Shown: positions 5,505-11,500, counted from the first letter of the stretch. The stretch: 64,000 nt of DNA from Salpingoeca rosetta (GCA_033442325.1 JAWQFM010000028.1:217202-281201); one strand, 5' to 3'. Numbers and translations are program-made. The notes: generated by a model from the sequence alone, not told the origin.

Positions 5505-8500
5505 ATGACCACAACCACAACCACCCCAACAACACCAGCATCCGCGGTCACCTCTTCACCGGCCAGGATATCGCTCGATGCGACCCAGCGCCAAAAGTTG
5601 CGGCAGCTTCTCTCCGCCCCCATCCTTGTCACCTCGGACACGATCCTCCACCATTTTCTCCCGCCCATTCAAGTTGTTCCCGCGCCCTTCATCGCCGGTG
5701 TCTACCAAGCACTCACACAGGCGGGCATCGGGCTCGAAGACGTGAGATTAGAAGGCTCCGGTGCCACCCATTGCGTCGCCAATGATCCCGTCGCATACGT
5801 ACGTTTATCCATTAGAGTCTGTCCGTGTGCACATGTGTGTGCATGTGTGTGCATGTGCATGTGTACTTGTGTCTGTCCGTGTGCACATGTGTGTGCATGT
5901 GTAAATATGTGTGCTTGTGTACCTGCATATGACCTGTATATGTGTATGCGGGTATGTATCTGTCTGCATGTGTTCGTGTGAGTGTGTGTATGCAGGTGTG
6001 CGTATGTTTGATGTCCCGTGTAAGCTTGATGTGCTCTGCAAGCATGCATGCAGGCACATGCACGCATGTCCAGTTTCCTCACACTCTTCTCGCTGCTTGA
6101 ACCATTGCACCACCATTCCCCCTTCCCTCCTTCCCCTCAGAACGACCTTGATGTTGTGTTTCATCTCGAGTCGCGGGATTATGCCAAGCTGATGCAGGTG
6201 CGCGAGATCCTCATGGCGTTCATGCTAGAAGTCGTCTTGGCCACACAGCCCGACGCCTCGGTGGACCAGCAGCGCGTGCGCCTCTACTTCACCAACATTT
6301 TCCTCACCCAGCTGCACATGCTGAGCGAGGGCGACACGCCATTTGCGCTCTTCACCCTCCCCGCCGTCACTGGCCACCCGTGCCTCGACCTCAAGTTTGT
6401 GCAAGGCCGCACCAACACGTACGAGTTCTCCGTCAACAGCTTCCAGCTCATCATCCCCATGTCCACCCGGATGGCGAGCATTGCAGACAGCGCCGAGGAT
6501 GCCAGCGAGGCCATGGTCAGCGCTGCCACGTTCATCTCTGGAGAAGACGCCCAGGGCACACCCAGCGACGAAAACGGGCGTGGTGGAGCTGACAGGAGAC
6601 AGGACCACCGCAGCCGCGGCGACAACAGCGCGGGCAGCGATGATGTGAGCGGTGCGAGCGAGCACGACAGCGAGGGCGGCCACGACCCCGATGCCACAAT
6701 CCTTGCGCCGCAGAGCACGGACGACCAATCCGCAGGTGACGAGACAGAGACGGAGACAGAGCTCCTTCAGCGCGACATGTTTGGGTCGCTTCGGGACGCC
6801 CCTGAGAGCCCCCGCACTGCGCCAGATGCCGGCAGTGACACGGAGACAGAGGCGGAGGCTGTTCCTGCAAACAAGCCCGCGCCCACACAAACCAAGCGCA
6901 AGAAGAAGCAACAGCAACAACAACAACAACAGCAGCAGCAGCAGCAGCAGCAGCAACAACAACAACAACAACAAGAACAAGATGGTGATGAGACCGTTAC
7001 CAGAATACGGAAGAAGAGAAAAGGCAAGAAGCACCGCAAGCAGAAGAAGCAACAGGCTCAGCGGCAAGCAGAGGAGCCAGACAACGTTAGCGCGGTTGCT
7101 GATGGCGCTGGTGGTGATGTGAGCGGTATTGAGGCGGACGTCGAAGATGACACACATGACCACGAGCCTCTCGACAACAGAATACACCAACAACAACAAC
7201 AACAACAACAACAACAACAACAACAACAACAACAACAACAACAACAACAACAACAGCAGCAGCAGCAGCAGCAGCAGCATGAGGCAAGGCATGCGACGTT
7301 ATCAAAACAACAGGACAAGCCTCAGAACACTGAGCAAGCAAACCCGCAGCAGTCGCTGCGCCGAAGACGATCGGCCCCGCCGCGCACAACCAACGACACC
7401 CGCCGTGTGGACGGCGATGCCGAGGTGGTGCTGCAAGCCAGAGTTCAGGACGGCTCGGACCAGCTCCCAAGGCCCACTGCTCCACAAGAGACGTTCTCCA
7501 CAGAGGCCGTGACGGAAGCGTCGTTGGCCGCCAAGGTTCCCCTGCGCTCGGGCGCGCGGCCGCGCGCCTCGTCGTCCAGCGACACCACCCCGACCCGTGT
7601 GGACGTCAACGTCAGCGTGGACGTTGTTGTGGGCGGTGGCGGCCGCCGCCGTCGCAGCGCGAGCCAGCAGCGCGAGCCGTCCTCTGGTCAGGCCGGCCGC
7701 TGGCGTGGCGCCATTCCGGGCAGCGATGCGTTTGTGAGTGACACGGAGACTGCGGAGGACCTCGCCATGGAGCGCAGCGGTCGCGCTGGCACCCGCGGCG
7801 GCGGCCGCGGCGTCGACAGCGATACAGGTGACGACCACGACCTCTCCACCCAGCAGCAGCAGCCCCAGCAGCGCTACCTACAACAACAGCACTATTACCA
7901 CCAGCAGCAGCAGCACCACAACCATGCACAGTTTGATGGCATGGGCGTGGGCGTGGGCGTGGGCGATGTCAGCGGCGACGTGAACAAGCGGTCCTCATCG
8001 TCCACCCGGTTTGTGCCAACGCCTGAGACGCAACAGGAACGCATGCTGCACACGCAACCACGGCTGGCATACTCGCAGCCACAGTCGCCGCACCACGGCG
8101 CGGGCCACCCGCACCAGTCGCAGCACATGGCGAACCATTACCACCAGCAACGGTCAGCCCACATGTACGGCGGCGGCCAGAACCCGGGCGCCCAGTCAGC
8201 CAGCGGGCCCAGCAGAAGCACCGGTAATGCGACTGGTGGAAGCAGAAGCGGCGGCAGTGGCGGCGGCGGCGGCCTATTGCCCGTGGGTGGCAACATGAGC
8301 ATGGGCCGCGGTGGTGGCGGCGGAGGCGCAGGCGGCGGCATGATGATGGTGATACCGTTTGCCCAGATCCCCAACATTGACCGCGTCGGGGCGCCCATGG
8401 TTGACCTGGACGCTAAGGTGATCGAGTGCGAGAGCACGTATGGTGACGTGCGGGCGGCCATTGAGCACGCAAACAAGCGCATCATCTCCGTGCCCAGCAT

Positions 8501-11500
8501 TGGCGTTGTGTCGAAGAAGCGGGGCGGGTGCCTGCTGCGGTATGCGCTGCTGCGCTGCAGCGGCTACACGCTGGACAGCCACCTACCGCCGCTTGAGCTG
8601 GAGAATGTCATGGTGGCGACGTTTTGTGCCGAGTACGAGGACATCACCAAGCAGTCGGCCTCCATGTCGCTGCAGCGGCGCCTGAACCGGTACATGGTGT
8701 CGCACATGCCGCCGCACCGGCCCAGCAGCTTTGAGAACCAGATGGGGTTCCTCACCGAGCTTGAGCGCCTCTTCATGCAGTGGTCCGACACCAACAAGCT
8801 GCTGCTGAGCCAGGAGGAGCTGGTGGACACTGTGACCGGCATGATCCAACACTACCAGGACAACATGCAGCGCATGTTCCAGAACCATGCGTACGCCATG
8901 ATGATGCACCAGTACAACCTTGCGCTTGCAAGCAGCGGCATGGGCGCCCGCCAAGGCATGGGCTACCCCGGGCTCGCCATGTCGTCGCAGCAGAACTTCT
9001 TTGGCGCACCTGTTCCACCGCCCATGGCAGGCGCGTACGGCCGCTACGGCGTGTCCCCGCACGCGCGCACCATGAGCCCAGACGTCGGGTCCGCCGGCCG
9101 CAGCACCAGCGTCGGCAGCACCGCCTCCTCTTCTCGGCGCCGTCACCACAGCAGCAGCAGCAACAACAGTAGCCACAACCACAACCACAACCACAGCAGC
9201 GGCAAAACTGGCGGCCACACAGGAGGCGGGCGTGGGCATCGGCACAACAGTGGCGGCTATCACCACCAGGGCTACCAGACGCACGGCCAGCACTTGTACC
9301 ACGGGCAGCAGCAGCAGCAGCACGGACAGCAGCATCCGCACCAGCACCAAGACAGCAGTGAGCGAGGAGATGCACGGCGCAACGGGCAGCATGTTCGCGC
9401 AAGGAGTCACAGCCACACCAATGTGCACGCGCTTGCCTCGGCGGCGTCGGCTTCGCTGGCAGACCACCCGGGCAGAGCCGTGCCCGGAGAGGGCCGAAGC
9501 GCCTCAGTGACAAACATGGCGGTGTCCTCTTCATCGCACCACCTTCACCACCATCAGTCCCAGCAGCCGCAGCACCCCCAACATCACCGCCAGAAGCCCC
9601 AGCTGCAAGCTTCAGGCTCCGTCACCAGCGCTGGAATCACCACTCGCAGTGATCGCAGCGGCAGTCAGCGAGGTATGGGCAGCGGCCCAGACGGCGCCAA
9701 TGCGGGGCCGACGGCGGTATCTGGCGGAGGCGGACGCGATCGCAACGCCAGGCGAGGCTCGAAGCAGTCGTCATCAACGCCGTCTCTCTCTGTCCCGCCA
9801 TCGATGTCGGGCACGTCGCCAGGCCCACGCCACCAGTCGCCCATGTTCCGCGACGACATGCAAGGGTTTTTCATGGGCGGGCGCCAGTTTCACTCCCATT
9901 CGCGCCAGCACTTCTCGCAGCAGCAGCAGCATGCTGCCTTTCAACATGCGCTGTACCTGCAGCAGCAGCAGCAGCAGCAGCAGCAGCAGCAGCCCCGCCA
10001 CGCCGTTGTTGGCGCTCAGCGAGGCGGCTACCAGGGTCAAGGCAGCGGTGCCGGCAGTGGGCGTATCGGCTACGAGCGCCGAACGTCTGAGCCAATAATG
10101 GCTCCTCAGGCGGGCATGGTGCTGGCAAACGGGTACCCTGCTGTGGCGACACCTGCGTTGCCGACTGCGCCCGTTGCCGGCGCGCCCGCCCCGCTGCTGG
10201 GCCACGTGCCGCCTGGCATGGTGGTACCCTCCGTGCAGGGCTCACCCCCACGGAGCGCAGGCAATGCCAGTGGTAGCGTGAGAGGAAACAGCGCCTCTGC
10301 CCAGCAGCAGCAGCATGGTCGGCACTCTGCGTCGTCCTCCCTGAGCCGTCAAGAACAGCCCGGTGGTCACCACCACCATCAGCAGCAGGCGCCACAGGGC
10401 AGCAGCCAACAGCGCAGCCACAGCCACCACTCTAAAGGTGGACGCCGCAACAGGCGAAGCCCAACCGTGCGCGCCCGTGCCAGGTCACAGTCCCCAGAGG
10501 CCTCCACGCGCAACAGCGGCAGGCACACAGAAGGTATGCGAGCTGGCCTGTTGCAGCACCCGTCTGAGACAAAAGCCCATGCGCAACAGCAACAGGTGCC
10601 ACCACAGCCAAAGCCACCACAGCAGGCGCAGGCGCAGTCGCAGTCGTCCACGCAGAAGCAGGCGCAACCACAACCGCAACCGCAATCGTATGCGCAGCGG
10701 CTTGCCAGTGGGGCTCGTCGCGACCAGGCGCCCTCAGCATCTGCTGCCTCCGCCTCCAAGAAGCAGCAACAGCAAGGGCCCAGCAAGGGCAAGCAGGGCG
10801 CGGCACACCCTGGCGCTACTGGCAACGGGAACACCAAACGGTCGTCTGGACAACAACAGCAGCAGCAACAACAACAACAACAACAGCAGCAGCAGCAGCA
10901 GCAGCAGCAGAGCGCTCGCGCTCATGGCAGCAACCATGTCGACACTGGCAACAACGACGGCGCTGGTCAGCGACGTGGCAAGAAAGGCCGCGGGAAGAAA
11001 GGCAACAAGAACAGCAAGAACATGCGAAGCAGCAGCGTGTCGTCGCTGACCATTCCCTCGTCTATGGCGCCAAGTTCCAGTGCGCCGGCCACGCCGACCG
11101 TGACGATGCCGCCGTCCCCGGCACGAGACACAGGCGCCACCCAGCCCAAGACGCAGCTGCCCAAGGGCGCCCCGACATACAGCAGCAAGGTGGCGCAGGC
11201 AAATGCCATGCAGCAAAAAGCAGCGCGTGCCAGCAGCAAGAGCCCTCCCGGGGGCGCCAACACCTCGGCAACGATGCGGCCCATCAACTACGCCAAAGCA
11301 GCCACGGGCGGCTCGAGCGCCCAGCAGTCGAAACAATCCCAGCAACGCAAGCAGCAGCAGCAGCACAGAGCGCAGACGCCGCAGGAGCAGTCGGGCAAGC
11401 AGAAGCAGAAGCAGTCCCATCGTCGCCAGCAGTCGGCTTCGTCGCCCGGAAGTGCAAAGCTCACCTCGAACTGGCGCAGCAGTGCCGGTGCTCCTGCACA

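Follow-up and report, generated by a model that had tools for sequence, protein, structure and literature searches.

Does a TENT5/FAM46-like poly(A) polymerase remain a genuine member of its family when several hundred disordered residues stand inside its catalytic domain, and what are those residues? The question is raised by a locus of the choanoflagellate Salpingoeca rosetta contained in a 64,000-nucleotide (nt) stretch of DNA (GCA_033442325.1 JAWQFM010000028.1:217202-281201), hereafter the window, to whose positions all coordinates refer. TENT5 proteins are non-canonical, cytoplasmic-type poly(A) polymerases; in animals they stabilise mRNAs that encode secreted proteins, and one of them, TENT5C, acts as a tumour suppressor in myeloma. 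A choanoflagellate orthologue is the nearest outgroup for asking about the ancestral TENT5 enzyme. We found that the locus is a single-copy TENT5/FAM46 orthologue whose family assignment is secure. We consider it probable that this is a bona fide orthologue and that its great size comes from a lineage-specific, largely neutral expansion of low-complexity sequence in a tolerant surface loop and in the tail.

An open reading frame (ORF) scan located the first ATG on the plus strand at 5505, in a frame open to 5981, and a second open frame of 2,330 codons at 6048-13040, on the same strand and in the same phase. The resulting gene model has two exons of 98 + 2,299 codons (about 2,397 in total), exon 2 being one open frame of 2,299 codons, in agreement with an earlier sequence-only reading of this DNA that had put the protein at about six times the usual size. 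In the list below, GC3 stands for G+C content at third codon positions and pLDDT for the predicted local distance difference test, the per-residue confidence of AlphaFold2.

5505..5798, plus strand: exon 1 (98 codons), beginning with the first in-frame ATG and ending in ...DPVAY; encodes the N-terminal portion of the TENT5 catalytic domain, hG[GS] motif included; Pfam profile positions 2-72, best PDB matches TENT5A/C.
5799..6140, plus strand: intron 1 (342 nt, phase 0); donor GTACGT, acceptor with a pyrimidine tract and then CAG; TG/CA-type repeats, internal stops, GC3 0.42.
6141..6542, plus strand: start of exon 2, middle of the catalytic domain, with the DxD motif, the third carboxylate, the SFQ strand and the following helix; Pfam profile positions 73-185 at 46 bits; alignment to TENT5C; pLDDT 74-90 for model residues 1-110.
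6543..8351, plus strand: disordered low-complexity insertion; pLDDT about 30, low hydrophobicity, no in-frame stop, microsatellites.
8352..8936, plus strand: end of the catalytic domain and five-helix C-terminal helical domain; strand VIEC and helix YGDVRAAIEHA (8418-8470), RGGCLLRY 8520-8543 onward; Pfam profile positions 188-298 at 42 bits; alignment to TENT5C/B; pLDDT 85-97; superposes on TENT5B/C jointly with the N-terminal half (Z 19.2).
8937..13040, plus strand: C-terminal tail of low complexity, about 1,365 residues long and still within the exon-2 frame; TGA stop at 13038-13040; three islands common to relative P0001.

The junction 5798/6141 joins an exon 1 ending in ...GSGATHCVANDPVAY to an exon 2 that opens at 6141 with NDLDVVFHLES and ends at 13040. 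It gives a GS-to-DLD spacing of 17 residues, equal to that of P0004, a transcript-derived protein of Choanoeca flexa, and the acceptor falls at the identical codon, just before NDLD, in contig L004 of the closest relative, P0001. Tandem repeats lie inside intron 1 at 5825-5902. We also observed that imperfect TG/CA repeats occur throughout this intron, that its length is a multiple of three with a phase shared by both exons, and that its retention would stop translation at TGA 5979-5981.

Family membership was examined with exon 1 and exon 2 as separate queries. Exon 1 matched Pfam PF07984 (NTP_transf_7, TENT5/FAM46; curated cut-off, 27 bits) over aa 26-99, against profile positions 2-72, at 25.7 bits, which is slightly below the cut-off when taken alone. 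The whole exon-2 ORF scored 79.6 bits (E 3e-22), above the cut-off, in two stretches, one from 6141 onward (profile 73-185, 46.2 bits) and one at 8403-8771 (profile 188-298, 42.1 bits), and no other Pfam family appeared anywhere in it at E<=1. The three pieces are colinear, and just two profile positions are left uncovered between the last two. Searches of PDB sequences returned TENT5A/B/C as the top match for each piece. An alignment of 63 relatives has 54 columns with a conservation of 90% or more; the S. rosetta protein carries the conserved residue at 36 of them, GS, DLD, LKFV, FSV.SFQ, ES.YG and RGG.LL.Y being among these. The identification as a TENT5/FAM46-like poly(A) polymerase, proposed from the DNA alone, is therefore upheld by three colinear profile matches and by TENT5A/B/C as best PDB matches, and the concern that domain searches could miss or fragment the gene proved half right, as Pfam fragments the domain but does not miss it. 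A six-frame profile search of the whole assembly recovered these three pieces alone; the gene is therefore single-copy, and a second TENT5 paralogue in this genome was ruled out.

All three catalytic motifs are present. The hG[GS] motif (Gly73-Ser74 of TENT5C) is found in exon 1 as LEGSGATH, with GSGA at 5754-5765; the [DE]h[DE]h motif (Asp90 and Asp92 of TENT5C) is NDLDVVF at 6141-6161, with NDLD at 6141-6152, aligned to DLDLIF of TENT5C; and the third carboxylate, h[DE]h, lies in LDLKF at 6384-6398, where Asp is aligned to Glu166 of TENT5C. Further motif positions are SFQLII (6438-6455), ECESTYGD (8424-8447) and RGGCLLRY (8520-8543). These sites correspond to the published catalytic residues of TENT5C (Gly73/Ser74, Asp90/Asp92 and Glu166; PMC8286142) and of xtFAM46B (Asp91/Asp93/Glu167; PMC7049688), and an Asp third carboxylate is allowed by the superfamily pattern h[DE]h (PMC4857005). 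It had been proposed that the motifs are intact and that Asp here departs from animal TENT5. The motifs are indeed where they had been placed, but the Asp is not unique to this protein, as it occurs in 17 of the 17 members of the choanoflagellate-type group and in two sequences of the animal group. In TENT5 proteins the two domains are bridged at the nucleotide site by a Glu-Lys pair, which is conserved here as Glu-Arg. Because all catalytic motifs, the Glu/Arg inter-domain pair and the single-copy status are retained, the enzyme may well still be active, and the motifs together with the predicted fold suggest that S. rosetta TENT5 would be catalytically competent.

To ask where the insertion lies in the fold, we used an AlphaFold2 model of window 6141-9020 (960 residues, guided by an alignment of 42 relatives). 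In the N-terminal flank, pLDDT was mostly 79-90 up to residue 100 and 74 over residues 101-110; in the C-terminal flank (residues 755-932) it was 85-97. Between them, residues 135-737 reached only about 30, poly-Q helices excepted. Foldseek returned TENT5 structures as the nine best matches. In VIA-align, model residues 1..911 superposed on residues 90..346 of 6JYJ chain A (Z 19.2, root-mean-square deviation 2.6 Å, 242 residues), and superpositions on 6JYJ, 7CQZ and 6W36 gave Z 18.6-19.2 over 238-246 residues covering both halves; the next structural family, CCA-adding/tRNA nucleotidyltransferases, reached Z 7.9 at most. Since the superposition spans model residues 1..911, both halves are predicted to fit the two-domain TENT5 fold at once. 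The published catalytic domain comprises residues 9/10-229/230, with the helical domain after it (PMC7049688, PMC8286142). As the insertion point falls between TENT5C-equivalent residues ~186 and ~216, before the end of the domain at 229/230, the insertion lies inside the N-terminal catalytic domain, and its earlier description as lying between the lobes is only approximate. Downstream of it come the last catalytic-domain strand (VIEC...) and helix (YGDVRAAIEHA), the inter-domain linker, and then RGGCLLRY, which opens the helical domain. In the crystal of xtFAM46B, residues 198-200 of the same loop are disordered (PMC7049688).

The size of the insertion was measured as the spacing from the Q of SFQ to the Y of YGD, which is 664 residues at this locus against 30-31 in most relatives. 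The net insertion thus amounts to ~634 residues (~1,900 nt) by motif spacing, and to ~600 residues by pLDDT. Results showed that the segment 6495-8402 (1,908 nt) has 0 in-frame stops, compared with 7-21 in the other five frames, and that shuffled copies of it carry 15.7 stops on average, with 0 of 2,000 stop-free. Outside the CAA tracts its GC3 is 0.76-0.81, against 0.42 in intron 1. With this composition, an open frame and a frame that stays open to a C-terminal motif common to P0001, the insert is probably coding, and we infer that it is translated in vivo. Hydrophobic residues make up 14% of the insert against 36-42% of the folded flanks; it contains acidic stretches, basic KRK clusters and Gly-rich and His/Gln-rich runs, together with two poly-Q tracts at 6909-6980 and 7184-7279 (22 and at least 30 residues). 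CAA/CAG arrays at 6909-6980, 7184-7255 and 7254-7279, which recur in the tail, constitute ~13% of its 1,908 nt. Another domain inside the insert was ruled out, there being no other Pfam family at E<=1 and no folded unit in the AlphaFold2 model except the poly-Q helices. Two claims of the sequence-only reading are thereby sustained: that the insertion stands within one uninterrupted exon, the fold resuming at ~8418 (no in-frame stop, 664-residue spacing), and that it is disordered (pLDDT ~30, 14% hydrophobic).

We then compared this loop across the family. With the C-terminal half as query, a full HMMER search against 1.84 billion representative sequences gave eight proteins, and a word search seeded with the compact relative P0008 added 58 further members, for a total of 66 relatives (P0001-P0066). 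The closest, P0001 (1,105 aa, N-terminally cut, from two run assemblies), shares 57% identity with the N-terminal half of the S. rosetta protein and 50% with its C-terminal half; where the alignment extends from the latter into the tail, identity is 31% over 498 columns. It has the same intron position and, at the same site, a loop of 184 residues in one open exon. Of the S. rosetta insert, only the last ~40 residues and low-complexity runs align with P0001, and the insert body has no specific similarity to it. Across the family the spacing from SFQ to YGD ranges from 26 to 664 residues and exceeds 50 in 13 of the 66 relatives:

Most members: 30-31.
Three choanoflagellate-type sequences: 68-79.
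P0060: 144.
P0007: 165.
P0001: 184.
P0063 (rotifer): 221.
P0051 (Stigmatopora argus) and P0050, fish TENT5C-like paralogues: 305 and 406.
P0066: about 400.
S. rosetta locus: 664.

The S. rosetta insertion is the largest in the sample, yet it is the extreme of a recurrent pattern, as loops of 165-406 residues are also present in other protists, a rotifer and fish paralogues. Kuchta et al. 2016 had already remarked on a few FAM46 proteins with insertions inside the nucleotidyltransferase (NTase) domain (PMC4857005). In a FastTree phylogeny, which has long branches and no outgroup and was used only for the split between choanoflagellate-type and animal sequences and for the pairing of S. rosetta with P0001, these two proteins paired with support 100 in a 17-member group that includes Choanoeca flexa, and a fully supported branch separated this group from the animal sequences. 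The view that the gene is a TENT5/FAM46 homologue of the pre-animal lineage agrees with this placement.

The tail has three islands colinear with P0001, at 9387-9413, 10455-10499 and the extreme C-terminus (12984-13037), the last of which reads AVPV.PDPAL.D.TN in common. Because the extreme C-terminus is common to S. rosetta and P0001, the whole of exon 2 is read to its stop in both species. This motif, at or close to the C-terminus, is PDPAL.D.TN here and (D/E)(I/T)TN in other choanoflagellate-type relatives (P0001-P0006, P0008), and was not seen in the animal sequences. The islands at 10455-10499 (RSPTVRARARSQSPE) and 9387-9413 (QHVRARSHS) are basic and Ser-rich within an otherwise unconserved tail, and RSPTVRARARSQSPE would fit the RxRxxS pattern of basophilic kinases.

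We propose that ~600-634 disordered, repeat-rich residues would be looped out between the SFQ strand and its following helix, on one side, and the last catalytic-domain strand and helix, on the other, leaving the two flanks to assemble, as predicted, into a normal two-domain TENT5 fold. The insert would have arisen in a tolerant loop through lineage-specific, largely neutral low-complexity expansion, partly by slippage of CAA/CAG microsatellites, and the same process probably also made the 1,365-residue tail. Neutral repeat expansion is likelier than a dedicated regulatory module because the loop has expanded repeatedly elsewhere and the insert body is not conserved; the body would then lack a specific function. 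The window has further CAA/CAG codon runs, up to 47 units long, in open frames outside this gene (23618-23788, 48905-49045 and others), which makes poly-Q expansion a regional or genome-wide habit and not one specific to this gene.

Several points weigh against this explanation. The non-conservation of the insert was judged against one distant relative and does not exclude a function, and the basic KRK clusters and long poly-Q tracts could serve localisation, RNA contact or self-association. The exon status of the insert rests on open frame and composition. The AlphaFold2 model was built without exon 1 and was guided by TENT5 relatives, so it shows compatibility with the fold and is not independent proof of it. 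The conserved Arg that positions the inter-domain loop (Arg176 of xtFAM46B; PMC7049688) is replaced by Asn in S. rosetta and P0001, where an Arg precedes it by two residues, and is retained in other choanoflagellate-type members; K143, D152, W154 and R275 (alignment column numbers) are also changed, and because of these substitutions activity could be altered or lost. Finally, fish paralogues that bear insertions have lost the GS serine and the third carboxylate, so that insertion and loss of activity can coincide. We also noticed that the inter-domain linker is ~3 residues longer in S. rosetta and P0001, the same two proteins that have Asn at that position; the areas concerned are window 6384-6410 (Arg176 equivalent) and 8490-8530 (linker). 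The Asn and the longer linker may have changed together, altering the way in which one domain is held to the other.

In the first alternative, the polymerase is active and its disordered insert works as a regulatory or scaffolding module, for instance a phospho-regulated tether, a localisation signal, or a poly-Q self-association element that gates or targets the active site. The sequence-only reading had likewise called the loop regulatory. Basic clusters resembling nuclear localisation signals or RNA-binding segments (KRKKK, RIRKKRKGKKHRKQKK) speak for it, as do the poly-Q tracts that AlphaFold2 draws as helices and the conservation with P0001 of the last ~40 residues before the fold resumes. 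The loop also lies in a segment peculiar to FAM46 proteins, for which Kuchta et al. suggested possible contacts with substrate or partners (PMC4857005), and an internal motif conserved between the fish insertions at the same site indicates that insertions in this loop can be functional. However, the insert body has no specific similarity to P0001; the spacing varies from 26 to 664 in the family, with compact members within the same choanoflagellate-type group; part of the insert, ~13%, is plain CAA/CAG microsatellite; and similar sequence occurs in the gene's own tail and in other genes of the window. A regulatory role for the insert was thus not borne out, and we regard such a module as unlikely, if still conceivable. 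The bolder proposal that the 600-residue loop is a working part of the enzyme, a tether patterned by poly-Q and charge that serves self-association or binding of RNA or partners and thereby controls access to the active site, seems to us very doubtful; if true, the loop would represent a pre-animal form of TENT5 regulation that was later replaced in animals by separate partner proteins.

A second alternative, that the protein is a pseudo-enzyme which has kept the TENT5 fold, lost polymerase activity and become mainly a large disordered scaffold, would account for the 18 of 54 highly conserved columns that differ here, among them the Arg176 equivalent, now Asn, and a number of positions that are normally charged or aromatic. 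It would also suit the interruption of the catalytic domain and the precedent of the fish paralogues. Yet all three metal- and nucleotide-binding motifs and the Glu/Arg inter-domain pair are intact, the Asp third carboxylate fits the superfamily h[DE]h (PMC4857005), and this is the sole TENT5 gene in the genome, with no active paralogue to cover a loss. We therefore consider a pseudo-enzyme to be quite improbable.

Partial or complete removal of the insert by introns or alternative splicing, leaving a mature protein nearer the normal size, is highly improbable: although the gene does have a repeat-rich intron (5799-6140) and Kuchta et al. warn that some FAM46 insertions may be gene-model errors (PMC4857005), the 1,908 nt are stop-free in this frame and in none of the shuffles, with a GC3 that is coding-like and unlike that of intron 1, the 184-residue loop of P0001 is encoded within a single open exon on a contig where intron sequence is still present, and the Choanoeca flexa protein with a 68-residue loop derives from a transcript assembly.

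Returning to neutral expansion of a tolerated loop in a genuine TENT5, the analysis yields a checked two-exon model, a set of intact motifs and a map of a catalytic-domain loop that tolerates hundreds of inserted residues in several lineages. This map is useful for construct design, such as loop-deleted versions for biochemistry, and for internal tagging. No new kind of enzyme or mechanism is revealed, and the protein owes most of its size to the kind of low-complexity expansion that is frequent in this genome. The family member itself was already known, as Kuchta et al. 2016 had catalogued S. rosetta FAM46 and, together with its Monosiga brevicollis counterpart, listed it as sister to Metazoa (PMC4857005), and the size of its insertion is an extreme but ordinary variant.

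The closest known systems include the choanoflagellate FAM46 homologues listed by Kuchta et al. 2016 and the choanoflagellate-type sequences P0001-P0013 (Choanoeca flexa P0004 among them), which share with S. rosetta a clade and the Asp third carboxylate in xDLKFVQ, and most of which have, as it does, a (D/E)xTN-type C-terminal motif. Most choanoflagellate-type members are of compact size, 351-670 aa with a loop of 26-94 residues; P0001, at least 1,105 aa long, has a 184-residue loop, and S. rosetta has by far the longest loop and tail among them. With the vertebrate TENT5A-D proteins (mouse/human TENT5C 7CQZ and 6W36; Xenopus FAM46B 6JYJ), it has in common PF07984, the order of the GS, DxD and third-carboxylate motifs and the predicted two-domain fold, at ~20-22% identity in structural alignment. 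In contrast to these proteins, it has ~2,397 codons instead of ~390-400, a loop of 664 instead of ~30 residues and a disordered tail of 1,365 residues. It also has Asp and not Glu at the third carboxylate, Asn at the Arg176 position, Glu/Arg in place of the Glu179-Lys247-type inter-domain pair, and an inter-domain linker, SVPSIGVVSKKRGG, longer than the vertebrate ATRNPEEIRGG.

The fish TENT5C-like proteins P0051 (Stigmatopora argus) and P0050 have a large disordered insertion at exactly the same catalytic-domain loop. They are of vertebrate type, have GA and not GS and a Gly at the third carboxylate, and are probably inactive. Their 275-376 extra residues include an internal motif, PPPAKKTCSTS...CPSPKLQRK.SRK, that is common to both and absent from S. 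rosetta. The class II CCA-adding enzymes and bacterial poly(A) polymerases, finally, are the next-best structural matches (Z 6-8), and differ in a far lower structural score, the lack of a match at sequence level and their other substrates. Their position behind TENT5 agrees with the published description of FAM46B as 'prokaryotic-like' (PMC7049688).

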